A stretch of DNA of 63,794 bases, filler included, from Polymyxa betae A26-41 (Eukaryota; Protista; Endomyxa: Phytomyxea): assembly GCA_003693705.1 (NCBI GenBank). It is 5 parts of 5 records of this genome, joined end to end, with 100 filler letters (N's around TTAATTAATTAA, not from the genome) between each part and the next. Parts side by side here need not be neighbours in the genome. Positions count along the whole stretch, not along the records: positions 32,925 to 58,059 come from RBZT01000502.1; 4 more parts are not named here. One strand, 5' to 3'. Shown here in pieces: positions 1,936-56,292 of the stretch. How positions within the stretch are numbered: the first letter of the stretch is position 1; each line of letters starts with the position of its first letter. Both the position numbers and the translations under genes were made by a program. Under the pieces are notes generated by a model that ran no database searches, was not told where the DNA came from, and was given only the letters and a program-made list of their open reading frames with translations.

Positions 1936-2012
1936 ATGTTGTAGGCAGATTAGTAGAATGAATGTATTCATCAGATAATAAATCACCAGGGCCCAATCTT
2001 TGGTCGGACCGA

Positions 2013-4943
2013 TCATCTCCGTTCCGATCGCCGATATCCGTGACCATAAACTTTAGCGTGGTCTGCTATCCAACACAACTGATAATCGTGAATCCCGTTT
2101 TTCTTCGTTGGCCATACATAAATCCAGTCCATATGGATCACTATATTGCATTTGGATGCGTGAATTTGTGTACCTAGCGGCCTAGGAATACGTATTCCCC
2201 CTCTTGTTGGTAGGCAATGTAAACACGAGTTACATAAAGTGCGCATGTCTTCTGCGCAGTTTTGCCAGTACAAATACTGCGGAAGTTTCTGCGTAGCAGC
2301 CTGATAGCCTAGGTGGCCGCTGTTCTCGCCTGAATGCGCAATTATACAAAGCCTAATCTTCAAATTTTCAGCTTCTTTAGGAATGATAATCTTCTGTTTA
2401 TCATGCGTAACTAATAACCCGTCTTCATTGTATTTAGGGTTTTTGACTTGTAAAAAGTCTTGTTGCGCCTTTTTGATTTCTTCTATCGATTGCCATACAA
2501 AATCAGGCCTCTGCATGGGTCGTACTCGCCCTTCGTCTGTGATCTTCAATACTTTCGCTCTTCTTATGAGGACAGGCCCATCTTCTTCTCCTGTCGTACT
2601 GGCCCCCCAGCGTGTCATGAGGTCAGCCCAATAATTTTCTTCGCCTTTGATATTCTCTATCTTGTAACGAAATCTCTGCATTTCTAGGGCCCATCTCTGC
2701 AATTCCTGCGCAGTAGGTTTCGAATCCTGATGCTGAGAAAAAATCTGTATCAAATTTTTATGATCGCAGAAAAGTTTAAATGGTTTCTTCAATTGCAATA
2801 GATAATCAAGCTTTTGCATTGTATCTTTTATGGCAAATCTATCTTTTTCGGCAACAGTCCAGTTTAGTTCCGACCCGTTAAACCGATGTCCCACGAACCC
2901 TAGCGGTTCATGTCTCTGTAGTCCAATTGGTTTTTCTGAATCTTCAATCGGAATTTGTGTAACCATTCCAGATGTATTATATTCATTCGCATCAGTGAAC
3001 ATACACTGAATCATATCATCTCTTGGGAATGAAAGCTTTGTACGATATGCGATCGCGGTCTTCAGCTTCTCGAAAGCCAGCTGCGGGCCCCAGCCATACT
3101 TCGATAAGCGAACTTGTCTCGCTACGCTTTTCGTTCGTGCGGGCTGGTTCTTCATTGATTCTTCAAATATATCTTGTAAGCATCTAACTGTCTTATTATA
3201 TTCTGGAATCGATCGGCTCATCCACTGAGTAACCATGAGAAATTGCTGCAGGTCTCGCGCAGTTTTGGGCTGCGGTATTGCTAGCAGGGTCTCAATCCTT
3301 TCCGGGTCGTGGGTTACGCCATCCGGAGAGAATATTCGTCCACAGAATTTGGCCGACCTAGTGTAGAGTTCACACTTCTTCACGTTAAATTTTATGTTAC
3401 TTTCTACGGCCAATTGTAATGTCATCTCAAGATACTGAAACCAGTCATCTAATGTCTTCGCATGTCCCAGCAGGTCATCAATACATATGATCAAGGCTAT
3501 ATTAAGGAGGCTTTTAAAGACTCCAGCCATTCTTGCCTGGAACTGGGTCGCTGAATTTAAAGCGCCCTGAATTGACCTTCTAGGCGTATACACGCCATTA
3601 TCTGTCATAAATGAGAACATTTCTTGACAATCTTCTGCTAGCGGCATCATCCAGAATCCTTTGAATGCATCCAGCTTGAACCAGTGCCTGGATCCCGCTA
3701 AATGGTTGACTATGGATTCTAAAAATGGCATAGGCCACGCTGTGCTCTCGCTGATCGCGTTGACTGCTCTTAGATCGACGCACATTCTTTTTCCACCGTC
3801 ACCTTTCTTCACTACAACTACAGGAGAGGCCCACTTTGAATTTTGATGTTCATAGACCAGTCCATATTTCATCAATTCTTCTACGAATTTCTGTTGGAAT
3901 TCGCTATCTTCTGGTTTGTATTTTCTTGCCGGGCATTTGTAAGGTTGTGAATTGGACTTCAGCTGAGTCACGAAAGGGGTGACCTTCGCTGGCGGTTCTG
4001 GCAATAACTTCACCTGCCATGCTTTTTCAAATTTGTATAATAAATTCTTCAGTTTATTTCGCCATTCTTTGGGGAGACCATTTTCTTCTGCTCTCTTCAG
4101 CATTGCTTCAATTTCGGACCGCACCTCCGTTTGGTTCACGGACCCAATTACTGCGCCCTCTTCCTGGTCACTCCCTTCTTCGATATCTCTGTTTGGCGAT
4201 TCTTCATCAGTTCTCTGGGTGCCATGAGCTTCGTTTCTGACATTCTTCCGCCAAATAAGTGCGTCGAGCGCAGTTTTTGGCTCTATTCCCAGTTCTTCAA
4301 GCAGGTCGCTCCCCAGTATGATTTCGTCACTGGGTACATCCCTAATCAGGCACTTCCGTCGGCGTGATACGACTTCACCCGCACATGTCCGTAGTCTAAT
4401 GTCTAGAGTTACGGCGTACGTGACGACTACCTCTGTAACATTATCGCCCCGACGTAACCGCACGGGCTCTGCGAGCTGTATCTTCTCAATGGTAGGGTCA
4501 ATTTCATAGCACGATCGGCTATTATTTTTGGTATTAGAGACACCGCCGTGGCGCCGCTATCTAGGATACCTGGTACGTATAAACCTTCACAGATCCTAAC
4601 ATCTATTTGTTTGTCATCTACCCTACTCCCAATTCGGCATACCAATGGATACTTTGAATGTTTCTTCTTGAATTTATTATCTTTCTCCATCAAAAGTGCG
4701 CGAATTTCCGCTTTAGTCAAGGGATGGGTTGGGCACAGAAAGGCCGGATGCCTAATTTTGTGACAGCTGAAACATTCCAGCGTACAGTTTTCATCGATTT
4801 CTCTACTCTTCGGTTTCTTCTCCTTCTGGGGTTTCTTCGGATTAACAGTTACCTGTTGTTCACGGGAGAGCTTCTTTCCCGTGGTCTTCCTTTCGCTAAC
4901 CGCCTTCAGCGCTGTTGCGGTCAATATTTCCAGAAAAAGACCC
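2013..4943 (-). mobile_element. Ty3/Gypsy gag 3' end + pol (protease, RT, RNase H, integrase N-terminal part), one frameshift, integrase truncated
   Basis: CFSCHKIRHPAFLC knuckle and ILDSGA in ORF 4427-4924; ORF 2013-4463 has WASPVVVVKK, RMCVDLR, KLDAFKGFW, CIDD (YxDD variant), RNase H FTDA..CDHKNL..WADLMTR, integrase H..H..CLHC and HMDW. Confidence 0.95.
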
Positions 4944-34470: not shown

Positions 34471-34542
34471 TTCCGATACGGGGACTCGAACCCCGGTCTC
34501 CAATGTGAAAGACTGGTATACTGACCCCTGTACTATATCGGA
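34471..34542 (-). tRNA. tRNA-Glu (TTC)
   Basis: TCCGATA acceptor stem pairs with TATCGGA; anticodon arm CCAGT-CTTTCAC-ATTGG; GTTCGAGT T-loop; oligo-T downstream. Confidence 0.95.
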
Positions 34543-35307: not shown

Positions 35308-35394
35308 GCCCGCGTAGCTCAATCGGTAGAGCGTGGGACTCTTACGGACTAGGAGTCAATCCCAAGGCTGCGGGTTCGAGCCCCGCCGTGGGCT
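35308..35394 (+). tRNA. tRNA-Lys (CTT) with 14-nt intron at the canonical 37/38 position
   Basis: GCCCGCG/CGTGGGC acceptor stem; D arm GCTC-AATCGGTA-GAGC; TGGGA-CTCTTA[cggactaggagtca]A-TCCCA; GGTTCGAGC T arm; T-run terminator 35397-35405. Confidence 0.95.
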
Positions 35395-35906
35395 GATTTT
35401 TTTTTGTCCGTCCGTGATTCATCTAGCCCTTCTGCGATCAAAAGTAATTTTTTGCAGTTCGCTTTTATGAGTTCTTTGTCCTATTTTTGAAAGAATTCTG
35501 AGTTTTTCTAATTTAAAAAAATCGTCAAAGCTTTATGTGTGACCATTTCTTGTCAGATTGAGGTTAATAGCATCCTGATTTTCATCAGGTTCTGATAGCC
35601 TGCGGAAGCTCAATACAAAAATTTGAGTTTTCAAAAAGAAAGACTTTTATATAACAAGAATTGCCTGTAATTTTTGAAGACTAGCAGTTTGGCGGCCGGT
35701 CATTCGCTCAATCCTATCATGGGGAGCCACGGCCATGACACTTTTTCGTCAGTTGACCTCAGATTGTCCCGGTTACAGCTCCGCTATCAGATCAGGATCG
35801 CAGCCATCTCTGTGAATTGAAAAAAAAAACTGCGCGCGGAATTGTCTTTGGCCGTATCATCACCGAAGAGGCGAAGACCGACGATTAGACGTTCATTTGC
35901 CTGGAA

Positions 35907-37751
35907 ATGGTTGGCCCAGCGATTGTCTTCCTGATACTGAGATTATCTGTGTGCTTGGCCGTATGCAGCTCTGGGTCAAGTTATGTTACTGATGATCGGG
36001 AAGAGACTCCTGTTACAACTGTCTCTCCTGTCGGCCTCCACGTTACAGACACCAGTGTATGATTGCACTGAAAAGAAGCCACATCATTCTAACACGGAAA
36101 TAGGAACCTATCCTCTATCATCATTATCCAATCCAAAATTTCTCAGATCTTCCGTCTTTCAAAAACCTCTTAGATTCCTCATTTAATCTGGATGTAAGAT
36201 TTTATATACGAAATGACCATGATATTGATTTACTATTCAGATATTCACTGAGAATAAAGTTTATGCAATGTCGGACATCCCACCTGATGATGGAATGTTA
36301 TCAACATCTTTATTACATCATACAGATCATGTTCCGGTTTTACCTCCTATTCAGGAAACTATCAATGTATTGTTTTTCTCTCAAGTTTCGTGTTTTACAA
36401 ATTGCTGAGGTTTACATATCAGAATGATGAACGATTCGAAACTATCTCCCGGAAACGTCCTCGTATTGACGAGACATCATCTCCAACCGACCTTCGGTTT
36501 TCCTTCAATCTTGATGTGACTGATATCTATGATTATAACAGTCTCTGCAAGTTTCTGGTGAATTTTCATGAGGTTTTGTCCCTCTGTATATTGACTGTAG
36601 ATTAGATCAAACAGCCGAATTATGAAGAACTTCTTTCTCTGTCTTCAAAGTCCGATGGTGATGCCTCGGAGCTCAACTGCCAATTTGATATCAATGTGAA
36701 AGAACATGATCTGGATCTGAACGAAATCGAACGAGTTCGTTCTGCTCAGAGCACATTACAAGAGCTGATTCTGATTGCGAATCTTTATCGGAAATTGATC
36801 TGGGCCTCTCGGAAATATGAATGGATTTGGAAGATTTACGGAATTGGATGTATTATGTGTGCGGTCCTGTACTACGATGTGTTATGGAATGCTGTCAGAA
36901 AGATCTCCGCAGGTTTCAGACACTTTGGGGGAATCGCTTCAGTCATCGGAAAATCCATAAATAATGTGACGGAGATGAATGCCGATCGAAACTGGCAGCT
37001 GCCCATCAATCTCTGAATCAGATTCGAGATGGTTATTTTGACCATCCTGATATAGAAAGTGACGAAAATCCGTCTTCGAAACGGATGAAGTTTAGTTCAC
37101 CACCAAAAAAATTCGTTCTGCCACTGTTTACCGCTGTCCCTGAATTTCTGCAATTGTTTGATTTTAATGTCGAGAAGATCACGGACAGTAATACTCTGTG
37201 TGCGTTTCTGGTGAGATTTATTCATATTGAATGCGGAATCTCACACTGAATCTGTAATACAGAAAAAGCCGCCTGATGATGATGAGAACGCGTTTCTTTC
37301 TGATCCGAGCAAATTGATCAAACGAAAATGCAAAAAAACAAAAGTTGTAAAAGACCCGATTATTATCAATGTTCTCGATGATCAGATCATATTGACCGAA
37401 ACCTCGGAAATCTCAACTTCTCAGACCACGTTACAGAAGTTAATATTGGTGGCCAGTTTATGTCTAAAAGTAGTTCGCGCCAAGATTGCCGACCCGAAAT
37501 TGAACATGAAACGTGAAGGGCGTGACAACTGGCTACAGCTAACATGTTACCCAGTGCTTTCATCTGTCCGAATATGCTGTCAGAATGATCTTCGGACTTT
37601 TCGATCTCAATGGGGAAATCCGTTTGTGCATAGTCGATTTGAAGCGCTTTGTTCTAGTTACAAATGCAACAGAAATCAGTGCGGATTTGACACTTTCATT
37701 ATCAGTAACAATAAGAAATATTCCATCGAATCACAACTTAGTTCGTTATAG
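35907..37751 (+). pseudogene. Multi-exon secreted protein family, copy A (signal peptide, NLS-like motifs, two Cys/His domains); frameshifts present
   Basis: MVGPAIVFLILRLSVCLA then GT donor; SRKRPR; two homologous modules LQ(E/K)LIL..; high nucleotide similarity to 53955-56292. Confidence 0.7.
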
Positions 37752-37849: not shown

Positions 37850-38100
37850 TTCAGGAGCTCATATTGGAGTGTCTTCAGCGAATGAATATCTTCCTAAAAA
37901 AGCGAAAATTGAATCCATCAGCTGATCTGAATGAATTTCTCGGGAGATTCTATTCATCCAATATTATACTGTCTTGAACATCATTGTAATAATGATGTCA
38001 ATTATTTCTCTCATATATTTGGACATTATATAGATCATTATCAATTCAAACAAAATCACTGTCCTGGACATACTGGACAATGTCCTGCTCTGAAAGCTGT
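37850..38100 (+). pseudogene. Further divergent copy of the Cys/His domain
   Basis: HPILYCLEHHCNNDVNYFSHIFGHYIDHYQFKQNHCPGHTGQC. Confidence 0.55.
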
Positions 38101-38114
38101 AACCCTAAAACCCT

Positions 38115-38933
38115 TAAATGCACCGGATTCGGTAGCGATTTCCGTTATTTCTGCTTCGTTGCAGGCGGGCCTTTGTGCCCATTCTATGACATAATTAGCG
38201 CCAAGTTTGAGTAGGTTAAAAATATCTTTGGGGATGTGGATTTTCCCAATGATATTGATGGGTGATGATACCTTTTTCTTGACAACGGTTTTTTTAGGCT
38301 TTTCCGTGGCCTTTCCTGTTTTAGCGCTGGTGTGCGCTTTCATCTGAGGTGGTGCTGTGGCTTTGGTTTTGGCTTTCGCCGCGACCTCAAGGACCACTTG
38401 AGCCTTACCGGCTTGAATGATCCATGCCACTACCGCATCTGATTTCAGTACTTTGGTACATATACCATTAGTGTCTGAATCGAAGCTTGCTAACAAACCA
38501 GACGACGCAATTTCCTGCTGTAGGAGTAAGCGTACGCCGTCTGGGTGGTATTTCTGATTGGCGTCTGATACTTGCTTCGCAATAGCATCTTTGACACCGC
38601 TCACTATCAACGGTTAGCAGCAGCGGTAATTTTTTCGGCTAAGTCCCTTCCGGCTAAGTCAAGTGACTTTTTAGGCATTGCCTGCCAGAGGTAGCCTTGG
38701 AGAAGGGGGTTTGGCACATTGGCCTCCTCAAGATCCTTCCCCAACGTACCATCATCCCCATCCACAGACATCGACATAGCGGTGCTGGCCATTATGGCCT
38801 CGTAGATTTTGGTCATATGGTGCGCAGCCTTGATGGCTTTGCTGACCAGGGGGATGATGGCGTTCACGATGAGCACCATAATATCCCGCATTGGCACCGG
38901 GGCGTCAGCAAGTACGCGGTCGGTCGCCTCCAT
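38115..38933 (-). CDS. N-terminal part of the Penelope-like ORF (frameshift at ~38608)
   Basis: ATG 38933 about 70 nt downstream of TATATAAG (39002-39009); Lys-rich tract then INIIGKIHIPKDIFNLLKLGANYV, resembling the PLE N-terminal N.S..L....LL.LG.NF motif. Confidence 0.6.
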
Positions 38934-39502
38934 TCTTGAAGTTTAGGTGTGATGTGAACACGATGACAACCAGAATGAGCAAGATCTATGGCGAAGTTGC
39001 CTTATATAGGTGCAAGCTATATTAGGGCTTTGCCATATAGTTCCTCTACCACTGGCGAGGTACCCTGGGCGTCACTGTGTCCCAGTGGAGCGTGTCAACC
39101 CTGGTGTTGCCAGGGCTGCGCTTTCCACAGTCATGCTTTACCATAGCCTTTTCCAGGGCTGCGCTGGAGGCGGAGCCTCTGCGCAGCCTTTGGTGGAGGC
39201 CGCGCCTCGTAGCAGCGGCCGACCTGACGGAGGTAACTGCATTCCCGGATTTTCCGGGTCTGATGTTGGTGAACCTTCATCCATGAGCATAGAATGTTCA
39301 TTACAGTGTTCAGTGACACTTCACGAATTTCGCTATGGATGTCGCGAAAGTTCGCGAATGTTCATTTAGCTATAAATAGCTTGTGACGTTTTGAAGTGGG
39401 TACTTCGTTTTCCTCAGTGAAATTTCCTTGAGCACGACGGTATCCGTATGCTAAGGAGTAGAGTAATCAAGACATAGTTGTTTCTAGTCCAGTCCTGTCA
39501 TT

Positions 39503-39545
39503 CCCGCGCGACCTGGTTTCGCCTTCGGCTCATCAGGCCACCGCA
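39503..39545 (-). ncRNA. Minimal type I hammerhead ribozyme motif
   Basis: Minus strand reads ggc-CTGATGA-gcc(gaa)ggc-GAAA-cc(a)gg-TC^gc; complete catalytic core, near-palindromic stem III, weak stem I; about 15 nt after the RT stop. Confidence 0.75.
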
Positions 39546-39559
39546 TTCGTTGCCGGTTA

Positions 39560-41479
39560 CTACTTTTTACGCTTGCGCGTAGGAAGTGTAACCGCCCCAT
39601 TTGGAAAGTATCTTTTTTTCCTCGTGGGTTTCATCCTACTGTCCGGTACCGCTATTTGCATTCCCGTGGGCAGGGTAACTGTAGGTTGTGACGCGTCAAG
39701 GAAAAGATTTTGCGCGGATTCTTTTTCCATGACGTTGAGTACTTGCGTGCGAAATTCCTTATCAAGGAAATTTTTCCTTTGTTTGTTTAGGCTTCGCACT
39801 TGTGACATTAGGCTCCGATTTCTTACTAATGCTGCCTTTTTGGCTTCGGCGCCCAATTTTTTCTCCGTGTCTCCTCTTAGGATGGAGTTATTGGTTTTGT
39901 TTAGGTAATCTAGCGTGGTTTTTCCTTTGCTAGCGGTGAGTTTGATATTGTGGAATTCCAGCAACGGCTTAAAGTTGTTTTGGATAAAATTCCATCTTTC
40001 ATGGGCGTGCCTTGAGTTGGCCATTGAATAATGGACGGCATCGTCCTTACGTGTTTTCTCTAACAGCCAATTTCTGTCAGAGAATTGGTACCGGAATTTA
40101 GCACGAATTATTTTATTGGGATACCCTGCTCGTCTGAGCTTGGATTTAAATTCGTGCAAATGTTTGAGATATTCGACCTTGTTCTGGCATGCTCGAAGAA
40201 TACGTACGCATTCTCCGGTGATCCAGCTGGTCTTTGTCACCTCAGGTTTGTATGTGGAAAAGTGGACAAAGTCCCTGTTGTTGGTAGGCTTGATGTAAAG
40301 ATTTAAATCAAGCTTCCCCGTAGACTCGTATTTCGAGCCTTTGGAAATTTCCAAGTCAAGAAAATGTATCTTCGTACCCGCCTGCTCTATGTTAAAAGAG
40401 AGCGTTGGGGCACTTGCATCTAGCAGTCTTGCTAGTTTGGGCAATGTTTTCCCTTTGCGTGTTATTATGAAGGTGTCATCCCTATATCTACGATATAGTA
40501 GGATTTGGTCATCGTATGGCCAGTTGTGCAGGTCTTTTTGAATTTTTAATTCAATGCCTATTATGACAAGATCTGCAAAGACTCCTGAAAAGTTGCCGCC
40601 CATCGCAGCTCCTTGTGTTTGTTGATACCATTCGTCTTTGTAGACGAAGTAGTTGTTAGTTAGTACCCATTTAGCTAAGTCTAAGAGGTATTCTAACTGT
40701 TCGTTATCACAATAGTTATTGTTTAGACATATTTTACGGATCATATCCAATCCTTGGTCTATTGGGATGTTGGTGTACATCGCGGTAATATCCATTGTGC
40801 CCAGGAATACTTTATCGGATTTGATAAGTTTGTTTTCTAATTCCTGGATAAGTTCCAGTCTATCTGTGACTACCCATTTGTATTGTTTTACAATGGGCCA
40901 GAATGTTTTATGCAGCATTTTTGCCGCTTTGGTCGTATACCAGCTATGACTGGGTATGATTGGTCTAAGACCGATTGGCGCTTTGTGAATTTTTGGCATA
41001 ATGTAGATTTTTGGGAACACAATTGGTTCATTGTGTTGGTCATATAGACTCAGTGGATCTAGATTATGTTTTTGGCAAAGGTCGTACATTTCTTGTAGTA
41101 CGCTCCATCTAGGATCTTCGTCCTTTTTCAACTTGCGGTATGGTCCCGATTTAAGATGCTCCTTCATCTTTTCGTTGTACCATGACTCGTGCATTAGCGT
41201 GAGTCCCGCATTTTTGTCTGCCATGCGCGCGATGATATGTCTAGATTTCATAAAATCTTCCAGTCGTTTCATCGCGTTGTTATTTTTGCATTGTTTAATA
41301 ATGTCAAAAATTGATTCATCAATCTCGCATTTTTGTATGTCTTGTTCTATGAACCTTAGCCAGAGTTCCTCAACCGGGGTTCTGTTATAAGTTGCTAAAA
41401 ATTCAAAGAATTTTTTGAGTTCTACATATGCCTCTAAGGTGAACTTCTGACTCGAATCCCCGCTATTGTAGCGTATCAA
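39560..41479 (-). CDS. Penelope-like reverse transcriptase (5'-truncated, uninterrupted 639-aa frame)
   Basis: ADKNAG, IYIMPKIHK...LRPII, DITAMYTNIP, QTQGAAMG, RYRDDTF, IHFLDL, YIKPT...HFST, GECVRILRAC, GYP; no GIY-YIG after the thumb. Confidence 0.93.
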   Translation of the reverse strand: MIRYNSGDSSQKFTLEAYVELKKFFEFLATYNRTPVEELWLRFIEQDIQKCEIDESIFDIIKQCKNNNAMKRLEDFMKSRHIIARMADKNAGLTLMHESWYNEKMKEHLKSGPYRKLKKDEDPRWSVLQEMYDLCQKHNLDPLSLYDQHNEPIVFPKIYIMPKIHKAPIGLRPIIPSHSWYTTKAAKMLHKTFWPIVKQYKWVVTDRLELIQELENKLIKSDKVFLGTMDITAMYTNIPIDQGLDMIRKICLNNNYCDNEQLEYLLDLAKWVLTNNYFVYKDEWYQQTQGAAMGGNFSGVFADLVIIGIELKIQKDLHNWPYDDQILLYRRYRDDTFIITRKGKTLPKLARLLDASAPTLSFNIEQAGTKIHFLDLEISKGSKYESTGKLDLNLYIKPTNNRDFVHFSTYKPEVTKTSWITGECVRILRACQNKVEYLKHLHEFKSKLRRAGYPNKIIRAKFRYQFSDRNWLLEKTRKDDAVHYSMANSRHAHERWNFIQNNFKPLLEFHNIKLTASKGKTTLDYLNKTNNSILRGDTEKKLGAEAKKAALVRNRSLMSQVRSLNKQRKNFLDKEFRTQVLNVMEKESAQNLFLDASQPTVTLPTGMQIAVPDSRMKPTRKKRYFPNGAVTLPTRKRKK

Positions 41480-41489
41480 TCATCTCCAT

Positions 41490-41833
41490 GGACTTTCCAG
41501 ATCCACAAAGTGACGAAAATCAGTCGTTCGTTCGAACCGATGAAATTTATTTCACCAACAAAGAAACTCGTTCTGCCTCTGTTTAGTGATTTTCCCGAAT
41601 TTCTCAAATTGTTTGATTTTGATGTTGAGAAGATCACCGACTACACTTCTCTGTGTGATTTTCTGGTGAGATTTATTCATTCGCAATTGGAAATCTCAAA
41701 CTGAATCTGTAATTCAGAAAAAGCAGCCTTCAAAGGGCTCGATGATCAGCTCATATTGACCGAAACCTCGCAAATCTCAACTTCGAAGGCCACAAAACAC
41801 CGTTTGAAAATGGTGGCCAGTTTATGTCTAAAA
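41490..41833 (+). pseudogene. Partial copy C of the secreted Cys-domain family, internally deleted
   Basis: Nucleotide match to 37045-37470 (aaagtgacgaaaatc..., gagaagatcac, atattgaccgaaacctcg, tggtggccagtttatgtctaaaa). Confidence 0.8.
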
Positions 41834-42051: not shown

Positions 42052-45000
42052 TTATACGATTACGTTTCCGGTAACAAAAGGGCACCTACGGGGACTCCGG
42101 CGGCTACGATTCAATTTCCTTCCCGCCTTATCCAGCGCATACTGATAGATAAAATTGCCCATCTTGACCTGCATGCGGGCCAGTACGGCGTCGAACCAAG
42201 GCGTCAGGGCCGGGTCGGTGTTATCGACCGAGTATTGATAGAGGAGATCGAAGGCGGACGGGCCGTCACCAACCTGCCGATGGAGTTCGGAGGCCGGAGT
42301 CCGGTCCAGGACGACATCGACGAGGTCGCGATGGGCGGCGTCCGACAGGCGGAGGCCGCGCAGACGCAGGACCGCCACCAGCAAGATCGAGTCGTCGATG
42401 ATCGTCTTGAAACAATCGTCGGAGAGCGCTTTCATGCATTTCGCAAGCAGGTCGAAAACACCGCTCGAGGGCCAGTACGGCATGGGCGGCGCTGCCGCAT
42501 CGATTTTCTCATAGACGCGCATGGCGATTTTGATCACGGTCAAGGAGGGGATAACCTCATGATGTGAGGAGTTGAGCTTGGGCGGACTCGGGTCACTATG
42601 AGCACAGTTTAGAGGAGAGGAATGCGCCGGCGGACCAGTACGAACACGTGCAGGAGACGAGCGAGAATCTGCGTGGGATTCACTAAGGCAACGAGCGGAC
42701 GCGGGCGGCCGCCGATCGCCGTTAATAGTAACGCAGCGACCACGTTGCGTTCGGGATCGGGTAACGTTTCCAGGTGTTTGTCATTCCTGTAACGGAGATC
42801 AGAATGCGCAGCACAAACGCGAAAAAAACCCCTTAAACCCTAAAACCCTAAACCGATTCGAACACAGCGTACCAGGCCTTAACAATGGCATCCTCCAATG
42901 AGATCAATGTGGGCGCTTGTAACCCCTCACGGACCTGATTGAACATCGTCTCTGACATTACAGTAGTCCAGGACGTGATACTTTTCACGGCAAGGGCCAG
43001 TACGTCGTCCAGGAAGTTCATGTCGATGCTGAAGAAAAAACGTTTGAGCCATGAAACCCGATGGTTCTAAACAAGATACTTTTCGTTGAAAATGAGCAAC
43101 GTTTGGCACAGGAGAGATTTGGCGCGCGAGAGTCGGTTAAAGTCCGCAGCGGACACCGCAAGGAGCATATCAAAGACAGGGCCGGGATTGGCCAGTAACG
43201 TCTCCCGTGGCAGATCGCACATGACCACGAACGCCAGATCGCCGACGGTGACGGCGGAACCCAGTGGGTAACGTGACGCCACCACTGGTAACAACAACTG
43301 CAGCCAGTATTTGCGGCCTTTATGTTCGGCATAATTGCCATACGCATGGTACGCAGCCAGGGTTCTCGCACCCAGCTCCGGCGTATACGGCACCTTCGGA
43401 TTTACATCCGCGCACATCCTACCACACAATAAAACTCCGAACTTTGTCAACACTGAAATGTAACGTTACATCTCCAATAGGTGATCCAGGGCCGGCGAGA
43501 TTCCATCGACCTCGGCGGAGCCAACAGCGAACACATTTGCGGCACGGACCGGGTCGGCTCCGATCAGGGCCAGTACGAGACGGCTGCAGAACGCCTCACG
43601 TGCGTGCTGTTGCTCTTCGGAAGGGCGTTGGTTGGCGGTCGCATAGCTGCGGTGGGTCAGCAACGGGGAAACGTGGCAAACCAGTACGATGTCGTTACAT
43701 TTCGTTACAGAACTGCCTGAACAGCTGTGACGAGCCCTCCCTGACAATCCACTGCACCAGCGGCTTCTCGACCAAGTCCGATTCGGAATCGACTGAGCGG
43801 ATTAGAAGATTGAACAAGTGGCGCTCGGGCATCGGCCTGCGGAGTGTCAGTCAGCGGAAACGTCAAGAAACGTAAACGCAGCAAAGTCAAGCAAGGAAAA
43901 CGTGGCAGCGAAAAGCGTGAGAAATGTAGCGTAACGCAAAACGAGGCAGCAAAAAGCGTCAGAAAACTCGAGAATGTAGCGTAACGTAAAACGTACTCGT
44001 TGTCCGAGGGAACGTAAAAGAGCAGGTCGTGGAGATCCGTATCCGACAGCAAATGCGTCATGTCCGAGCACCAAAGCATCAAGCGGACATGACGCTGCCA
44101 GAGATCGCGGTTGGCGAAGTCGCCGGACGCAAAGAACCACTCGGTGAAGAAGGGGTCCATGCCATCGCGAGCGATGTCGGCGGCGATCTCGTCGCGGAAG
44201 AATCGGGCCCAACGATACGGGCCCAGGCCGGATTGCGCCGATCGGCGAATCGCCCGCATCGTCGCCTCGGATAAATTTCGACTTAGGCAGACGTGATGGT
44301 AAAAGTCCACGGACCCCGGGTTCGGATTCCTATCACACGACAATGAGTACAGAAGAAGATTACAAAAAAATACTAAAAGAAAAAAAAGAAAAAAAGAAAA
44401 AATCTGGATTGTATAAGGGAGCAAAACACAGAATTTGGAGAGGATTCAAAAAACGTCAGGCGTCGAAAATGAGCAGAAAAGGAGGTAGAAAACGAAAAAA
44501 AAAATTGAAGAGAAATACTTGATGAGGCCCGGAAGGACCGCAGGCAGGGATTCCTCCGGAAGTCGGTTCAGAAGGGCTATTGTAGGATTACGGAGATCGC
44601 CGCTTGCAACAGGGCCCAGTTCGAGCATTCTCGCGATTGCCGCTGTGTTCGTAGTTACAAACTGTCCGGAGCATTCGTCCAGCAGACGCAGAGCGAAATC
44701 CACGAAATTTGCGGAGCGATGATTCACCAATCTAAACAATTGTTAACCCCGAAATCCACTTGTAACAAAGAGCATACAGGTGAAGTGCTGTAACGAGATC
44801 AAGCAGTTTCAGAACAGCGCTTCCTGGACGTTGCAACATAAAATCTTTGATGGAAGTGATGAATACATTGTAGCAATCTTCCGAAGGATCGCTGTTCAAG
44901 CTGCAAAAAGTACGGTTAGATTATGGATTGTCAAGCAATAGGCAGCGTTACATTTGCTGAAGCAAATAGGTGGCAAAGTCCGGAAGCTCGTCATCTGATA

Positions 45001-48337: not shown

Positions 48338-49367
48338 CGCAGTCCACGCAAATGTGTAGGGGGACATTCGTTCCTCAGTCAGATATATTTGTCGACATTG
48401 TGGCATTCGTATGGCTTCTCTAAAGTTTATCTTTTTGAAGTTATTTTTTTGTCCCAGTACCTAGTTCCTTAATTACGAGGATGAAACTTTCAACTTAATC
48501 ATCAATTCGATATCAATGTGCTGTATCCTTCAGCAAAATATAAAAGCGCTTTTTAATGTTACCAGGTATGACCAGATCTTGACCATTTCTCCCTCGAGTC
48601 TGGAGGCCGCACAGTCTCGTCAAGCTAGTGCAATCGACGACTGGGCCGAACGTGCCGACATTCACCCAGTTGAATCTGTGAGGGCAGAAGCCAAGTCGTA
48701 GAGGGTTTTTTCCACTTTCCAGTGGAATTGATCAAAAAGCTTAATACCAAACGTCATAAAGTTGCTTCCAAGCGCCATCGCATTCTCTAATTCCTTGTTC
48801 GTTTTTAGCAGAACAATGGCTTCAAACATTGCTTTGACACTATTCTAATGAATGGTCCCCATATACCTATATATACTATATATATCTGGCAAAGTCGAGA
48901 GCTGTATCTGCCCATAACTGATGGTTCAATTAACTGCTTTCTGTAATGTGAATACCTTGTGATGCATATTTTGATAAAAGTAACGATGTAGCTACCCAAT
49001 CGGCCAGCAAACCACGCTAGACGTCAAATGACACTAACGACAATGCCAGCAACGACGATAATAGCGTCATCGACCTTAAAATATCCAACGACGACAGCGT
49101 CGGCAATCAGCCGCTCAACGAAGTTATCGCCTCCGTTAGAGCGCATCTGGATTTGGCGCTGATGCCCAGATTGGCGATAGCAGAATCTATGCACGGCACT
49201 AAACTAAAAATACTTTTGTAATTGTTGAATAAAGAAGCAGAGTCGAGGCCACCCCGACTTACCCGACCCAGAGAAAGGAGACGAGTCGGGAGGCCACGCA
49301 GTAGGCGTCATCGCTCGCTCAATTTAGACTCTGACGAGTGTTCCCCTACACATTTGCGTGGACAGCG
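48338..49367. mobile_element. Putative non-autonomous TIR element (~1 kb)
   Basis: About 33-bp imperfect inverted repeat cgcagtccacgcaaatgtgtagggga / tcccctacacatttgcgtggacagcg; no clear TSD. Confidence 0.5.
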
Positions 49368-50302: not shown

Positions 50303-52943
50303 AAGTCCAAGTCCTGATTTTGCTGGCGGCGACCGTACAGGTCCTGGGGGCGGCCTCCTCGAATGATCCGGGCTTTGAACCGGTCGTGGGGGCGGCCTCT
50401 TCGCATGATACGCCGTTCAATTTCGAAGACCTTCATCCTGATCTTCAGCTTAAGATCGTGAATCGAGTCCGATCCGCCACGGACTTGGGTCATCTCGTTC
50501 TTGTCTGCCGACGCTTCATGCGATCGGGCTGCGCGCGGGTCGTCCAGGCCCTGTTCGAATCGCCGACGACCCCGACCTCCCTGATCCCCAAACTGATCCG
50601 TATGCTGGTCGTACTGGCTCGGCACGACCCCGAATCCCGCGAGCTCGTCCATCGTGTTCGCCCGCAGCAGGTGATGGGCCTGTACCACCTGATCATTCTG
50701 AGTCGATTCCGCACGGAGACGAAATCCGATCTGTTACGGAGTTTAATCGACGGGCTGGGCCTCTCTATACTGAACAATGAGACATCGCTGTATAGTCGGT
50801 ACCGACCTCCAAGGGAGAAGTTCGCACTCTCAGACCTGATTACGTCTGTTCCGCGTCCGTCTCTTCCAAATAATATCATTGAGGCTTTGAATCGCTGGGT
50901 CGTTAATAATGCACTTTTCTGGGTCCGCAATGTTGATGAGGCTCGATCCTGGCGCATTCCATCCTGTATTGATCCATCCAGTCCTTATCCGATTCGTCTC
51001 GCTCGTGCTGCTCATAATGAGGAAACCCTAATCACACTCCGAAAAAGTTACCCACCAACGTTCTACTATCTACACGCGTTCATCGACCTTGCTATGAGCC
51101 ATCTTCTGCGCAGTTTCCCCAAACATTCACATCCGCTGGCCGATCCGCAGGTCCTACTGGCACTCCGCCAGTACGGCGTCGTCTTTCCATTGCCTGGTTT
51201 CTTCAAAGATGTTGAAGTCTCGCCCGAATCCATGGCGGATATCGTCCCTATGTTGGCGATCTCTTCACCAACTCAGGTCGTCTATACAGCCTGGGATCTA
51301 CTCAGCTCCGGAGATTCCGGAGAGCAGAAATCCCTGGCTCTGTTGCGGATTCCTTTCATCCAACGACTGATCCTTGGTTGCACTACCAGCACGAACGACC
51401 ACTTTCGCTACTTCTCGCTTCTGATGATGAATGCATCTAATGAGTTCTTGGACGACCTGATCGCTCTTCCGTTCATGCACTGAGTCGTCAATATAAAGTT
51501 GGAAGTCTCACTTCCAAATATTGGCCTCTGTTCTTGTACACTGTTGGATTGGGCCGTTGTTAACGATCATTTCGATATGACTCGGACTTTGATGCGAATT
51601 CCGACGATCTCTCATTTCGTGGACGCAAATTGGGGTTACGGCATCAAGCATGTTATTGAAGATCTTTTATGCTGCAGATCGGATGCGAATGTTCGCGAAT
51701 TTCTGGAAAGTCCAGAATTTGTTACTGTGATACTCCGGGACATTCCATCTCTTATAACAACTCTGACATTATTCATGAACAGGAAATATGTAAAGCAGTT
51801 CCGTGCTCTCATACAATATTCGTTCTATATCAATATCCCGCTGATACACAATGTCGTGCCCACGACATCGCTCCCTCTCAAATTGGGACGGGGGGGCGCG
51901 GATTGAAGGTCGCCTCCGCGCACTTAAGTACACCATTCTCCGTGATGTTTTGCCGATCTGCAAACCAGTTTGCGGACTTTTCCAACATCAACTCCGGGAC
52001 TCTTACATATGAATCCGTCCGTGAGCGACTACAGTGGGCACAGCAGGTCGTTTTTCCCGCAATCAAAGACCTACACTCCTCGCATGCAGCCGCAGCCATT
52101 TCCCAGTACGCACGTCGCCACCGTATTCTTCCCGACGACCCGTTCCCGATAAACTCCGCCGTCATGATGAAGGACCCTGTCCGCTCTTCTAAAACTGAAC
52201 CGTATTATTTAGGCCCGCTTAAAGTCGTCCGGCGAACGAAAGGCGGATCCTATATCCTTCTCGACACCGACGGGTCCATTTTGTCACGCGCAGCCGCACC
52301 CTCCCAACTGAAATTGATCAGCCTAAACCCTGCCCTCGATAGTGATGATCATGTCGTGGACAAAATCCTCAAGAAAAAAGGTCCGCCCGCCGACCGCCAA
52401 TATCTGGTCCGATGGTAGGGCTTTGGGCCCAACCATGATTCCTGGGAACCCCAGAAACACTTCATCGATACTCGCTGCATAAGTGACTATTGGAGATCCC
52501 GTCCAGTCCGCGCCCCCCGTCCCAATTTGAGAGGGAGCGATGTCGTGCCCACGACAATCTCGGAGCCGCAATCCAGAATCGCCGGGTCCCCACCGCCAAT
52601 GTCCGCGGAAAGGACGCGTGCCAGCAGGTCGCTGCGGCCCCGTCGTGCTGTCCAAGGCACGCGCCTTATGAATTTGTGAAGTTTTCCGCGACCCGCCAAA
52701 GCCACTCTTTTTCTTGCTCCCTACTCCAGACAACTTCTTTTCTACTTACCATCACCAATAAAGGATCGTGTGCCATCGATCTCGCGTCTCCATCTCCCGT
52801 TCACCACACACAAATTGGAGCTCATTAAAATCGCCCGTGATCATGATCACCATATTTATCAGATATTACAGACAACCACAACTGTTACATTGTCCAAAAA
52901 ATCATTGAAGCACAGACATTCAGTCATGGCTTTTTGTTTATAA
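50299..52943 (+). pseudogene. Secreted F-box-like protein 2 with ankyrin-like repeat; in-frame TGA at 51481-51483 and a retroelement insertion at 51852-52808
   Basis: MKVQVLILLAATVQVLG; FEDLHPDLQLKIVNRVRSATDLGHLVLVCRRF; frame continues after the TGA with TLLDWAVVNDHFDMTRTLM; removing the insertion restores IPLIH-KLELIKIARD...AFCL*. Confidence 0.7.
51852..52808 (+). mobile_element. Truncated chromovirus (Ty3/Gypsy) insertion with 5-bp TSD: integrase C-terminus, chromodomain, PPT, 268-bp 3' LTR
   Basis: CACAA at 51847-51851 and 52809-52813; KTEPYYLGPLKV (GPY/F-like); chromodomain VDKIL..KG....QYLVRW*GF...DSWEP; PPT gagagggagcga then LTR TG 52541 to CA 52808. Confidence 0.9.
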
Positions 52944-53954
52944 AAAAATTATACAGAGCTTTTTGCTTCATATTTCAATAATAGTTTACAGTAGGGTTAT
53001 AATCACTAATTCGGACTCTTGCAAGTGGTAATTTGCAGATTCAATACAAACTGGAGTCTTGATTATCAACTGACAGTCACGCACTATTGTCTTCTCAAGC
53101 TGTGGTTTCAGCAGTCCTGCACAGAAGAGGAGAACGGGATTCGGCACTCTTTAAGGCTGCGATGATCAAAATTCCATCCTCCACGGTGTGTCCCAATTCA
53201 CCAATTCTCTATCTTTCGGCGAAAGTGCGTGGCTGTTGTAGCAGGTCGTGTTCGAGGAGGGAGTCGTCGTCGGCGATAGTTCCAAGGTAGGCACAGACTC
53301 ATAGGCACTCCGGGAAGAGGAAGAACGGGATGAGATCTGGAAGCCAAACATAACAATACAGAGTTCTATAAGGCGTTCGCATCCAATGTGACATCGACAT
53401 ATCTCGTCGAATTTTGCAGAGATAAGTTAACAGGATAAAGTTGTCATCCAGAACCTCATAAAGTATAACATCCTCTGCCAGATATTGTTTATCATATGAA
53501 CCTCAATGAAGCCCGGCGAACTCATTCAGCCAGCCCACGATTTGGCTGTTGTTTTGCCCCCTAGCAAAAGCAGCAAAAAGCGTGGCAGACCACATTACAC
53601 AATAGATCGCGTCTCTCTGCCGTGGAAAGCGTGCGCTATTCCTGGGCCGCTGAGACAAAGATAAGCAGCACGGAAGTCACTGCTCGGTTAAGCTGTCCAT
53701 AACGATATGGAGGCCTCGCCGCTATTCTGTCGCAGCCCACCGTTAGCAATGTTGCTCGTGACAAAAGGCAACTTGACCATTTGTACGGATATCTCTATTT
53801 AAGCAATACATCAATCTGAGCAAATGCACCAGCAAGGATTCGATCCTTTTTAGACCCAAAGAATGATTTTAGACCAGTTTTAGACCAATATTATTGAAAA
53901 ACTGCGCCAAGGTGTTTTGACCATCGTTTGAGTAACAAATTACAGAGCTCCCAA

Positions 53955-56292
53955 ATGGTTGGCCCAGCGATTGTCTTCCTGATACTGAACCTATCTGAGG
54001 GCTTGGCTACATTCACTACTGACCCTTGTAATGTTCCAGACTATCTGGAAGTGTCGACTGATGGTGTCTCTCCTCTCGACCTCCACGTTACTGAACCCAC
54101 AGTATGATTGCTCTGAAACGAAGCTACATCGTTCTAACACGCTATATAGGAACCTATCTTCTATCATGACTATTCAATCCAAAATTTCTCAGATCTTCTC
54201 TATTCCGACAACCTCTTTGATTCCTCATTTAACCTGGATGAAAATTTTAATGTATGAAAATATAACTGTGATATTATGATATTGATTTATTATTCAGATA
54301 TTCACTGAGAATGAAATTTGCGAAATGTTGGATATCCCACCTGCTATTGAAATGTTATCAACATCAACATCTTTATTACACCATTCAGATAATATCCCAG
54401 TTTTACCTTCTATTCCGGAAACTATCAATGTAACGCTTCTGTATCCATGTCTCATGTCTTAGAAATCGCTGATATTCTCATAATCAGAAAGATGCGCATA
54501 GTAATGTTACAGACCAGCTAGAAGAGACTCATGTTACTGTCTCTCCTATCGACTTCCATGTTACAGACGGAGTATGATTTTCTGTGTCAGAAGGAAGTCC
54601 CATCTCTTTAACATTCATTATAGGAACCCATTCTCTATGATTCATATTCCATCCAAAACTTCTTTGATCTTCCCTATTCCAACAACCTTTTAGATTCCTC
54701 CTCTAATCTGGACGAAAATTTCAATGTATGAAATGATTATATAACTATGATACTATGAAAGTGATTTTTTATTCAGATATTCACTGAGAATGAAATTTGT
54801 GAAGCATTGGACATCCCACTTGATATTGGAATGTTATCAACATCAACATGTTCATTACATCATACAGATAATATCCCAGCTTTACCTCCTATACAGGCAA
54901 CTATCAATGTAATGTTTCTGTATAAAAGTTTGATGGCTTACAAATCTCTGAGATTTTCATAATTAGAATGATGAACCAGTTAAAACTACCTCCCGGAAAC
55001 GTCCTCGTATTGGCGCGACACCATTTCCAACCGACCTTTCATGTTCCTTCAATCATGACGTGACTGATATCAATGATTATAACAGTCTCTGCAAGTTTCT
55101 GGTATATATTTTATGAGCCTTTATCCTTCTGTATTTTGACTTTACATTAGATCAAAGAGCCCAATGATGAAGAACTTCGTTCTCTGTCTTTAAAGTCCGG
55201 TGCTGTTCAATCTTCAAAAATCAACTCTCAGTTTGTTATCAATGTGAAGGACATGATCTGGATGTGAGCGAAATCAAACGAATCCGTTCTGCTCCGAGCA
55301 CATTACAAAAGCTGATTCTGATTGCGAATCTGTATCGGAAATTGATCTGGGCCTCTCGGAAATATGAATGGATTTGGTGGAAGGTTGATGGAAAAATCAG
55401 GGATTGGATGTATGAGGTGTGTCGTCCTGTATTGAGATGTGTCATGGAATGCTGTCAGAAAGATCTCCGGAGGTTTCAGACACTCTGGGGAAATCGCTTC
55501 AATCATCGGATTGTTCTCCTTAAATGTTCTGGAGATGAATGCCGATCTAAACTTGCTGCCGATCAGCTGATGAATCTGTTCCGAGATAGTTCGGCCAACT
55601 CTATTGATCCTCCTGATCTACAGAGTCAAGACAGCCCGCCCTTGAAACGGTTGAATTCAGTTCATCACCAACCGATTTTGCTCTGCCAAAGTTGATCGTT
55701 ATGCCTGACTTTCTGAAAAAATTTGATTTTAATGTGGAGAGGATCACAGACTACAATACTCTGTGTGCTTCTCTGGTGAGATTTATTCATATTGTATGAG
55801 CAATCTCACACTGATTCTGTAATACATAGAAAGAAGCCTGATGATAACGAGTACGCTTTTCTTACTGTTACAAACATCATGTTCCAATCAGGTCGCAAAA
55901 AACGCGCTACAAAAGCCCCCCTTATTATCAATGTTCTCGATGATCAGCTCATATTGACCGAAACTTCGGAAATCTCAAATTCGAAGACCACGTTACAGAA
56001 GCTGATATTGGTGGCCAGTTTATGTCTAAAAATAGGTCGGGCAAAGATCACCGACCCGACATTGAACATGAAACGTGAAGGTTGTAACTGTTGGCTGCTT
56101 CGAACATATTACCCAGTCCGATCCTGCCTTTCAATTTGCTGTCACAATGATCTTCGAATGTTTCAATCTAATGGGGAAATCTGTTTCTGCATAGTCGTTT
56201 TGAAAGGTCTTTGTTCGAGGTACACTGGCAAGAGCACAGAGTGTGTCTATCAGACGATCACTGCCAAAGACCAAGCTCAATATTTCGTTTAA
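53955..56292 (+). pseudogene. Multi-exon secreted protein family, copy B, with internal ~480-bp tandem duplication
   Basis: Starts identically to copy A (atggttggcccagcgattgtcttcctgatactga); 54045-54490 duplicated at 54520-54965; ORFs 55264-55695 and 55792-56292 carry the two Cys domains. Confidence 0.7.

Follow-up and report, generated by a model that had tools for sequence, protein, structure and literature searches.

The stretch of Polymyxa betae A26-41 DNA analyzed here (63,794 nt in full, referred to as the window) carries a slightly decayed single copy of an endonuclease (EN)-less, telomere-type Penelope-like element (PLE). Judged from its sequence, this copy comprises exactly one unit, circularly permuted at a single point of the linker between the N-terminal and reverse transcriptase (RT) parts of the encoded protein, and it probably arose from a template of circular topology that was joined at a nontelomeric break. 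EN-minus PLEs are already known, and what is unusual in the window is the copy; the kind of element is not new.

Organization of the PLE copy

The copy lies on the minus strand at positions 41490 to 38092 (3399 nt). Read along that strand, the RT part is followed by a hammerhead ribozyme core overlapping the end of the open reading frame (ORF), a spacer of ∼575 nt, an ATG at 38933, and an N-terminal part carrying one frameshift. The RT piece (39563 to 41490, minus strand) encodes the C-terminal two-thirds of the PLE protein, corresponding to amino acids ∼311 to 946 of the relative P0001, and includes the motifs ADKNAG, MPKIHK, RPIIPSH, and YRRYRDD. The preliminary description had reported an uninterrupted 639-amino-acid RT frame beginning mid-protein, and this frame was confirmed at 39560 to 41479 (minus strand). 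Its mid-protein start also stands, but the piece itself begins at 41490, since homology to a repeat family termed R reaches 41491. An in-frame TGA is present at 41482 to 41480, just inside the break. At the other end, a TAG TAA double stop (39557 to 39562, minus strand), identified from the tblastn alignment and translation, closes the RT frame 8 codons short of the usual stop of the family, which is the TGA within CUGAUGA; the codons beyond the double stop still encode PATNAVA, followed by that TGA.

The N-terminal piece consists of two parts on the minus strand. Part 1 (38607 to 38933; equivalent to amino acids 1 to 126 of P0001) starts at ATG 38933 and ends at a 1-nt frameshift near 38607 to 38611, and part 2 (38092 to 38610; amino acids 128 to ∼310) contains a K-rich stretch and a INIIGKIHIPKDIFNLLKLGANY motif and reads ...GAFKGFRVTAF at the break. 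The single downstream ORF described earlier therefore keeps its start at ATG 38933, but it resolves into two ORFs (38607 to 38933 and 38056 to 38610) separated by the frameshift, and element sequence ends at 38092 rather than 38056, the last 12 codons of the second ORF being part of a high-copy repeat. Exact look-ups found no public gene calls matching the window ORFs. The long open frames suggest that the insertion may be young.

Relatives and class membership

Relatives of the window element match RVT_1 in Pfam. The motifs ADKNAG, MPKIHK, RPIIPSH, GAAMGG, and YRRYRDD are invariant across 10 of them, and an LG.NY motif was identified upstream of the RT motifs in the linker alignment, in keeping with an RT of the PLE/TERT-related clade and its conserved N-terminal motifs, among them the DKG type. 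The nearest named protein is from the bdelloid rotifer Rotaria (E value, 5e−38), with an identity of only 26%, and a profile search reached a Rotaria protein together with P0032, an RT protein bearing a GIY-YIG domain. Using Pfam, no GIY-YIG domain (PF01541) was identified in the three window ORFs, nor was one present in the precomputed domains of P0001 to P0028, and the full-length relatives leave no room for such a domain, in agreement with the initial assignment to endonuclease-less PLEs. PDB searches returned only weak matches to the RT palm. Pfam gave no match for seven neighboring ORFs, and an Atlas search with a 459-amino-acid neighboring ORF returned nothing informative.

In a quick tree that covered metagenome relatives, a Rotaria protein, and a GIY-YIG-bearing branch, the window sequence was placed within a 14-sequence clade (support, 100) beside a second clade plus the Rotaria protein. 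This clade was apart from the GIY-YIG-bearing branch, in a tree with long branches that was midpoint rooted only. The proposal of an undescribed EN-minus lineage is thus upheld only in part: the clade is made up of metagenome sequences and was compared with Athena and Coprina by description only, but both of these are well described (PMC8557442, PMC6431247), and the relative L006 has their telomere cap.

Hammerhead ribozyme

A CUGAUGA...GAAAC...GUC core was located at 39536 to 39510 (minus strand), composed of CUGAUGA (39536 to 39530), the helix II hairpin (39529 to 39521), and GAAAC (39520 to 39516), followed by CAGGUC. Together with compensatory changes in two of the three pairs of helix II, the conserved core defines a minimal type I hammerhead at 39500 to 39552 (minus strand), with cleavage predicted after C39510. 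Inspection by eye found no covariation support for helix I. No hammerhead was identified by Rfam at the gathering threshold, or at E ≤ 1 over the whole piece, and a small-window scan gave a Hammerhead_HH9 match of only 12.4 bits, below threshold. The core is invariant at the ORF stop in eight relatives sharing only 40 to 53% amino acid identity. With helix III too short for folding inside a single molecule, the motif would act as a dimer-type hammerhead, a type reported for PLEs. The hammerhead sequence overlaps both the final codons of the ORF and its usual stop, and this embedding accounts for the conserved ...ATNAVT C terminus.

Lying inside the copied unit, the hammerhead did not define either end of the window copy. 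The element had been described as permuted around the ribozyme, which does not hold in a causal sense, as the break is in the N/RT linker, ∼2 kb from the cleavage site. Likewise, the order of RT, hammerhead, spacer, and ATG, previously read as a sign of permutation, is that of an ordinary head-to-tail junction in L001, L002, L003, and L005.

Spacer, tandem units, and telomeric repeats

The spacer (38934 to 39509, minus strand) corresponds to the 3′ untranslated region (UTR) of an upstream unit and represents the normal unit-to-unit junction of the family. Its promoter-like elements are a TATA box and a start-site motif conserved in the family; TATATAAG is at 39008 to 39001, and the start-site-like TCATTCTGGTTGTC is at 38978 to 38965, with a putative start at TCATTC near 38978. 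A degenerate C-strand telomere-like unit directly precedes the ATG, and in L006 the point matching this position is joined to (CCCTAAA)n. The C-strand telomeric tract of L006 (positions 3836 to 3893; 7- to 8-nt units) has a complete unit on one side and a 5′-truncated relative on the other. Two units with 99.9% identity are arranged in tandem in L002, and in L001 a 5′-truncated unit leads into the beginning of a further one. The head-to-tail layout of a partial tandem (pseudo-LTR) is shared by L001, L002, L006, and the window copy, and ∼14 unit-length contigs have terminal overlaps of 60 to 127 nt. The family 3′ end lies 196 to 870 nt downstream of the hammerhead (window, L001, L002, L005, and L006).

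The telomere-like repeats in the window and relatives are of the form T2-4AGGG, and the bdelloid-type repeat (TGTGGG)n was not found; a bdelloid rotifer as host was rejected on these grounds. No telomeric repeats were present at either end of the window copy, which is nontelomeric and oriented opposite to a neighboring telomere-type chain. In the relatives, eroded older copies are capped by C-strand telomere repeats, to which the 3′ end of the element is joined. The 3′-UTR promoter would drive transcription of the next unit, so that the RNA would be terminally redundant.

Permutation of the unit

In tblastn alignments with P0001 (954 amino acids), residues 1 to 126 matched 38933 to 38610, residues 128 to 296 matched 38607 to 38140, and residues 299 to 954 matched 41545 to 39536. 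The outermost stretch of the RT match (41545 to 41491; ∼18 codons) was rejected as element sequence, being homologous to repeat R and within the R3 fragment described below. The full-length relatives (920 to 954 amino acids) carry the N terminus and RT within one ORF, as P0001 does, bearing out the earlier view that the downstream ORF is the N terminus missing from the RT frame. The two window pieces cover these proteins end to end, with neither gap nor duplication at the linker break in the protein alignment, and the linker, aligned with an X placed at the break, was colinear with seven canonical proteins. Apart from chance 7- to 8-mers, the two outer ends share no DNA. These alignments support the claim that the two pieces form one unit without duplication. 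The window linker is within 4 to 17 amino acids of the relatives in length and somewhat longer, so up to ∼30 nt of filler or duplication may exist at the break. The copy departs from the family pattern only in that its two outer ends coincide at one position of the unit, 2 kb away from the point of hammerhead cleavage, and are bordered by two broken repeats that are unrelated to each other.

No second clear permuted copy was found among the relatives. L008 reads from canonical positions 1173 to 3733 and then from 1 to 1156 before a GC-rich, ExoIII-like flank; its contig begins inside the element and may be chimeric, leaving it ambiguous as a second case.

Flanks and junctions

Upstream on the element's strand lies R3 (41491 to 41833, plus strand), a 5′-truncated fragment of repeat family R that is ∼81% identical to positions 37045 to 37469 in R1 (blastn and three-way alignment) and is present at ∼80 times the single-copy depth. 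Downstream is a repeat termed T (37894 to 38091; ∼350 times single-copy depth). Neither is part of the element. Other copies of T run past 38091 into a different common sequence, and the window T copy is therefore broken at the junction; loose ends were seen at 38090/38091, and the T continuation is absent from the window. Essentially no microhomology could be read at either junction. The locus as a whole is a repeat-rich patchwork.

Two studies of organism A yielded unitigs that cover 38065 to 39506 and 39542 to 41729, and the depth of the PLE unitigs (155 to 163, versus 193 in unique flank) is at the single-copy level. The RT-R3 junction is spanned by unitigs of two runs (records 7 and 15) and recurs without differences in X3 (record 23) and X7 (record 30). 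In both X1 and X2, Logan unitigs end between 39506 and 39542, where the hammerhead region reaches ∼30 times single-copy depth. As unitigs break in this 30- to 60-nt repeat, the link between RT and spacer rests on the assembly, the equal depth, and the single spacer copy. No close canonical parent (>85% identity) was found in the two organism A read sets; organism C has a canonical relative with an identity of ∼85%.

Other sources of the arrangement were considered and rejected. An intron between an N-terminal and an RT exon and a site-specific transposon inserted identically into two tandem units were both discounted, as no further PLE piece is present in 32925 to 58059 and R1 and R2 are uninterrupted across the R3 start point; the transposon reading also fails because T continues elsewhere into a different sequence, absent from the window. 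A shared breakpoint hot spot was likewise rejected. The 5′ truncation of L001 is 25 to 45 amino acids further upstream and its contig ends before the N piece does, while the second copy in L006 is cut elsewhere and telomere capped. The breaks in L001 and L006 are ordinary 5′ truncations.

Origin of the copy

The circular or multimeric template proposed initially remains the best explanation for exactly one unit without duplication. A template of circular topology would have been opened, or copied, exactly once around, and the product joined between the broken repeats T and R3 at a nontelomeric chromosome break. One plausible route, falling somewhat short of likely, is that a unit-length DNA circle, formed by recombination out of a head-to-tail array or by closure of a terminally redundant cDNA, was cut open at an arbitrary position and taken up through end joining. 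More tentatively, the element's RT could have been primed internally by the broken T end, with copying ending on reaching its own start; the template would then be a circular RNA, or else an RNA with terminal redundancy, strand transfer taking the copying from its 5′ end to its 3′ end. The first route is ranked above the second because of the near absence of microhomology.

A linear history is quite improbable. In that scenario an ordinary partial tandem (pseudo-LTR) was formed and its downstream copy was later cut at the same site when an unrelated deletion or insertion occurred. PLEs as a rule form partial tandems with 5′ truncation (PMC8557442), the truncations of L001 and L006 likewise lie in that N-terminal third of the ORF, and the patchwork locus would offer occasion for such an event. 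Yet in a unit of 3.4 kb, two independent truncations would coincide to within ∼30 nt only about once in 100 cases (∼1%), the protein alignment shows the pieces meeting with nothing lost and nothing overlapping, and the 25-kb piece holds no further PLE fragment. An assembly artifact is less probable still. The stops of the X1 and X2 unitigs in the high-depth hammerhead region would suit a misjoin of two contigs ending in that repeat, with RT and spacer/N sequences at different loci, as when a rearrangement splits one canonical copy at its linker, but the common core is only ∼30 to 60 nt, a length that ordinary reads bridge, the X2 unitigs overlap by 20 nt, and the single spacer copy is contiguous with the N piece at the depth of the RT piece. 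Moreover, the canonical N-to-RT joint is not seen in organism A, and the artifact would require >22 kb of tRNA genes and repeats within one element.

Passage through RNA only, with a hammerhead-released unit RNA ligated to a circle and copied once by the RT from a broken DNA end, is doubtful. The hammerhead is conserved in every unit, circular RNAs are documented for PLE-associated retrozymes (PMC7229834), and the RTs of EN-minus PLEs have been described to use free 3′ ends of DNA (PMC8557442), all of which would fit. The many unit-length contigs with overlapping ends also fit, but tandem DNA such as L002 explains them equally well. Against this route, the cleavage site is 2 kb from the break, priming microhomology is absent at the T junction, and no RNA runs containing the window sequence were found; the TATA box, the start-site motif, and the telomere-joined 3′ end of L006 favor a linear RNA with terminal redundancy as the usual template. 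Nor is hammerhead processing required, as had been supposed, since a DNA circle excised from a tandem array would account for the copy just as well. If the RNA route were true, the element would be an autonomous relative of retrozymes. A broader proposal, that a hammerhead-made unit-length circular RNA is a normal stage of the family, copied once from any free DNA 3′ end, appears improbable. Tandem transcripts would be self-cleaved by the hammerhead and then ligated, the window copy would be the genomic footprint of this process, and the stop-codon hammerhead could serve as a switch between messenger and template forms. Such a stage, if real, would for the first time indicate a retrozyme counterpart that is autonomous and codes for protein.

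Returning to the circular-topology template, a one-unit permuted copy is hard to obtain by simple target-primed copying of linear RNA, and a one-unit copy opened internally is to be expected from an intermediate that is circular or has terminal redundancy, which makes the copy a concrete and testable footprint. Being only one decayed copy, it does not by itself establish the mechanism. It bears on how PLEs build tandem and pseudo-LTR structures and on what their hammerheads do. Among the EN-minus PLEs, the family contributes three features: a hammerhead that lies within the final codons and stop of the ORF, a promoter-like region at the 3′ end of each unit, resembling that of HeT-A, and T2-4AGGG telomere caps in soil eukaryotes that are apparently not rotifers.

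Comparison with known systems

Athena and Coprina are EN-deficient, telomere-associated PLEs (Gladyshev and Arkhipova 2007, summarized in PMC8557442 and PMC6431247). The family described here resembles them in its PLE-type RT without GIY-YIG, its hammerhead in each unit, and its head-to-tail chains, and in L006, where the 3′ end of one relative lies on C-strand repeats and a 5′-truncated copy is capped by telomeric repeats. At the 3′ end of Athena and Coprina, the hammerhead directly borders reverse-complement telomeric repeats (PMC6431247), whereas here it is located at the ORF stop, 196 to 870 nt from the 3′ end, and not beside C-rich repeats. The family also differs in its telomere repeats, which are T2-4AGGG and not of the rotifer type, and in having one fused ORF of ∼940 amino acids where EN-minus PLEs are described with two; the window copy differs further in being nontelomeric and permuted.

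Unlike the EN-positive PLEs (Penelope/Poseidon, Neptune, Nematis, and Naiad/Chlamys), the family carries neither a C- nor an N-terminal GIY-YIG domain. As in the pseudo-LTRs of Penelope, Neptune, Naiad, and Chlamys, a truncated upstream copy runs through the hammerhead region into the next copy, and the promoter lies within the upstream partial copy. In canonical PLE insertions, however, a full-length downstream copy extends to the element's 3′ end, whereas that of the window stops where the upstream copy begins, and the window copy lacks both the endonuclease and the 30- to 40-bp "tail" of canonical PLEs.

Drosophila HeT-A is a telomeric non-LTR retrotransposon found in head-to-tail arrays, with a 3′-end promoter that apparently drives the next unit. 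A similar promoter placement is suggested here by the conserved TATA box and start-site motif near the ATG, although the RT clades are unrelated and HeT-A has no hammerhead. DIRS-like elements, retroelements that integrate from circles, have a tyrosine recombinase and split or inverted terminal repeats, whereas in the window element Pfam identified no recombinase domain and no terminal repeats were found.

Retrozymes are hammerhead-bearing, nonautonomous retroelements that form circular RNAs (PMC4918200, PMC7229834). In contrast to these small, noncoding elements bounded by hammerheads, the window element is autonomous and 3.4 kb long, it encodes a protein of ∼940 amino acids, and its permutation point is away from the ribozyme site. 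It resembles them in that every tandem unit bears a hammerhead, in its connection to PLE machinery, and in plausible circular unit-length forms.

Structure of the permuted element

The Penelope-like retroelement (PLE) copy occupies 41490-38092 on the minus strand, with its two coding pieces in swapped order. An open reverse transcriptase (RT) frame of 639 aa (41479-39560, minus strand) is followed by a hammerhead core read as CUGAUGA-hairpin-GAAAC-CAGGUC (39536-39510) and a spacer of about 575 nt (∼50% G+C), which carries TATATAAG (39008-39001) and extends to the ATG of the N part at 38933. From there, ORFs of 108 and 184 aa, separated by a 1-nt frameshift near 38607-38611, were identified on the same strand. 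In an alignment with nine relatives, the PLE-type motifs ADKNAG, MPKIHK, RPIIPSH, GAAMGG, and YRRYRDD of the RT frame were invariant. None of the three window ORFs had a GIY-YIG domain by Pfam.

Searching among 5.8 billion proteins revealed unnamed relatives of 920 to 954 aa (43 to 53% identity), in which a single ORF encodes an N-terminal domain beginning MEA.D..L..AP with the RT after it. Using tblastn, residues 1 to 126, 128 to 296, and 299 to 954 of P0001, the closest full-length relative protein (954 aa), were matched to 38933-38610, 38607-38140, and 41545-39536, respectively, all on the minus strand; 41545-41491 in the last match lies beyond the element start. For the linker, the window N tail and RT head were joined through an X marking the break and aligned with seven canonical proteins (N domain and RT in a single ORF). 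The window linker was colinear with all seven, with zero blocks absent or duplicated, and the two outer ends shared no DNA above chance 7- to 8-mers. Judged by sequence, the N and RT pieces are halves of one protein; the tblastn matches and linker alignment thus bear out the proposal in the preliminary description that the downstream ORF is the N terminus missing from the RT frame.

The ends of the element were defined by its flanking repeats. Other copies of repeat T (37894-38091; about 350 times single-copy depth) run beyond 38091 into a different sequence common to them, placing the element end at 38092 (...GAFKGFRVTAF) and the final 12 codons of the 184-aa ORF in repeat T, outside the element. 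Homology to repeat family R (R1, 35905-37662; R2, 53953-56224) extends to 41491, and the element start was therefore set at 41490, giving a unit length of 3,399 nt. Essentially no microhomology was found at the junctions, and neither end carries telomeric repeats. Repeat T is AT-rich and, close to the junction, contains the short palindrome GGACATTGTCC. R1 and R2 are about 78% identical and contain internal ∼650-nt subrepeats, while a third fragment, R3 (41491-41833), is 5′ truncated; family R is present at 25 to 80 times single-copy depth, and its small plus-strand ORFs had no Pfam match.

The surrounding piece also carries a tRNA-Glu(TTC) gene (34471-34542, minus strand) and a plus-strand tRNA gene whose anticodon loop is interrupted by a 16-nt intron (35308-35394; anticodon CTT by Rfam alignment), both of which mark it as eukaryotic nuclear DNA. 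Two inverted-repeat pairs, with 44-nt arms (51852-51895 and 52513-52556; 95% complementary, 617 nt apart) and 34-nt arms (48338-48371 and 49334-49367; 91% complementary, 962 nt apart), could represent small elements with terminal inverted repeats.

Support from sequencing reads

Logan unitigs from two independent source-organism studies cover 38065-39506 and 39542-41729 with 0 to 1 differences, at a depth of 155 to 163 over the element versus 193 in unique flank, and the R3 junction recurs with zero differences in runs under two other organism labels. The window copy is real and single. Because unitigs end within the hammerhead, a sequence common to about 30 related copies, the RT-to-spacer link depends on the original assembly; it is supported by the presence of the spacer in one copy only, by equal depth, and by a shared core of 30 to 60 nt.

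No canonical N-to-RT joint was found in source-organism reads. In X7, a run under another organism label, a 3,453-nt contig from a relative at about 85% identity carries this joint. Window-identical pieces, including the R3 junction, occur in X7 at a depth of 2 to 3, and the ∼85% canonical relative at ∼20; this run is therefore mixed, or it comes from a close relative keeping the canonical form.

Organization and relationships of the family

Each ATG in the family is preceded at about 45 nt by a conserved TCATTCTGGTYGTC, itself 25 to 30 nt downstream of a TATA-like box. In L006, a relative's locus, a complete unit ends 45 nt past TCATTCTGGTYGTC and is followed by short C-strand telomeric repeats (7- to 8-nt units) and then a 5′-truncated relative. 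Such telomere-repeat attachment is a described signature of endonuclease (EN)-minus PLEs (PMC8557442, PMC6431247). Taken together, the start-site region and the L006 attachment suggest that each unit carries at its 3′ end a promoter that drives the next unit, yielding terminally redundant RNA. Tandem forms were evident in L002 (two units, 99.9% identical), in L001 (a 5′-truncated unit, then the start of the next), and in about fourteen unit-length contigs with overlapping ends of 60 to 127 nt. The window order of RT, hammerhead, spacer, and ATG is thus that of an ordinary head-to-tail junction.

In a quick tree, the window sequence and P0001 were sisters within a clade of 14 sequences that is unnamed and well supported, apart from the GIY-YIG branch. 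A profile search matched a bdelloid Rotaria protein (E value, 5e−38) and, at greater distance, an RT protein bearing GIY-YIG (E value, 1e−14). The suggestion of an undescribed EN-minus lineage holds only in part: the clade is unnamed, but EN-minus PLEs with this telomere signature had already been described. More distant P0024-type relatives (L041, 4050-8507; L031 and L035) show 5′ parts paired head to head in inverted orientation, with arms 95% identical, and adjoin long arrays of ∼73-nt tandem repeats.

Origin of the permuted copy

The sole feature needing explanation is that both outer ends lie at one point between two broken, unrelated repeats. Two independent truncations falling within about 30 nt in a 3,399-nt unit would have a chance of roughly 1%. 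The window copy is probably the footprint of a circular-topology template used exactly once around, and the permuted topology in the preliminary description, from a circular or multimeric template, agrees with the colinear halves and the lack of duplicated DNA at the ends. A unit-length DNA circle, excised from a tandem array by recombination or formed by closure of a terminally redundant cDNA, could have opened at a random position and entered a break by end joining. Alternatively, a broken T end could have primed the element's RT internally on circular or terminally redundant RNA, with the RT transferring from the template's 5′ to its 3′ end before halting at its own start. The missing microhomology slightly favors the DNA circle. 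Neither route requires the hammerhead, which lies 2 kb from the break, and the role in permutation earlier ascribed to the ribozyme is not upheld.

The copy is oriented opposite to a putative neighboring telomere-type chain on the plus strand. About four C-strand telomere-like repeats (7- to 9-nt units) occur at 42820-42856, and a TCATTC motif about 50 nt upstream is similar to the start-site region of the PLE, an arrangement suggesting a head-to-tail chain of one element's 3′ end and then a 5′-truncated one.

The copy looks young, with 639 open codons in the RT piece and one frameshift in the N pieces; of its stops, the break-site TGA could be junction filler, and TAG TAA, upstream of the hammerhead, could be natural. 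Source reads contained no close parent, perhaps because telomeric parents were lost or because the unitigs lack them. No other copy was clearly permuted. L008 fits permutation in shape, but its sequence starts within the element and runs at the other end into an ExoIII-like flank that may be chimeric. At L008 3717-3923, a P0001-type element is cut off at canonical position 1156 and abuts a GC-rich sequence coding for the C terminus of an exonuclease III-like protein; either this gene was captured or transferred next to the element, or the metagenome contig is chimeric.

The hammerhead at the ORF end

All eight family members examined, from public assemblies, have the hammerhead at their ORF stop, with an invariant catalytic core despite 40 to 53% protein identity and with compensatory changes in helix II, although the window copy has an Rfam score of only 12.4 bits. 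Helix I and the CUGAUGA box (39510-39562, minus strand, in the window; also L001 to L009) encode the last ∼8 codons and the TGA stop, and this overlap explains why the C-terminal ...ATNAV(T/A) is conserved at 40 to 50% identity. We know of no PLE for which a ribozyme lying within the end of a coding sequence has been described. Helix III is too short to close within one molecule, a trait shared with hammerheads of the dimer type that have been reported for PLEs (PMC4209133).
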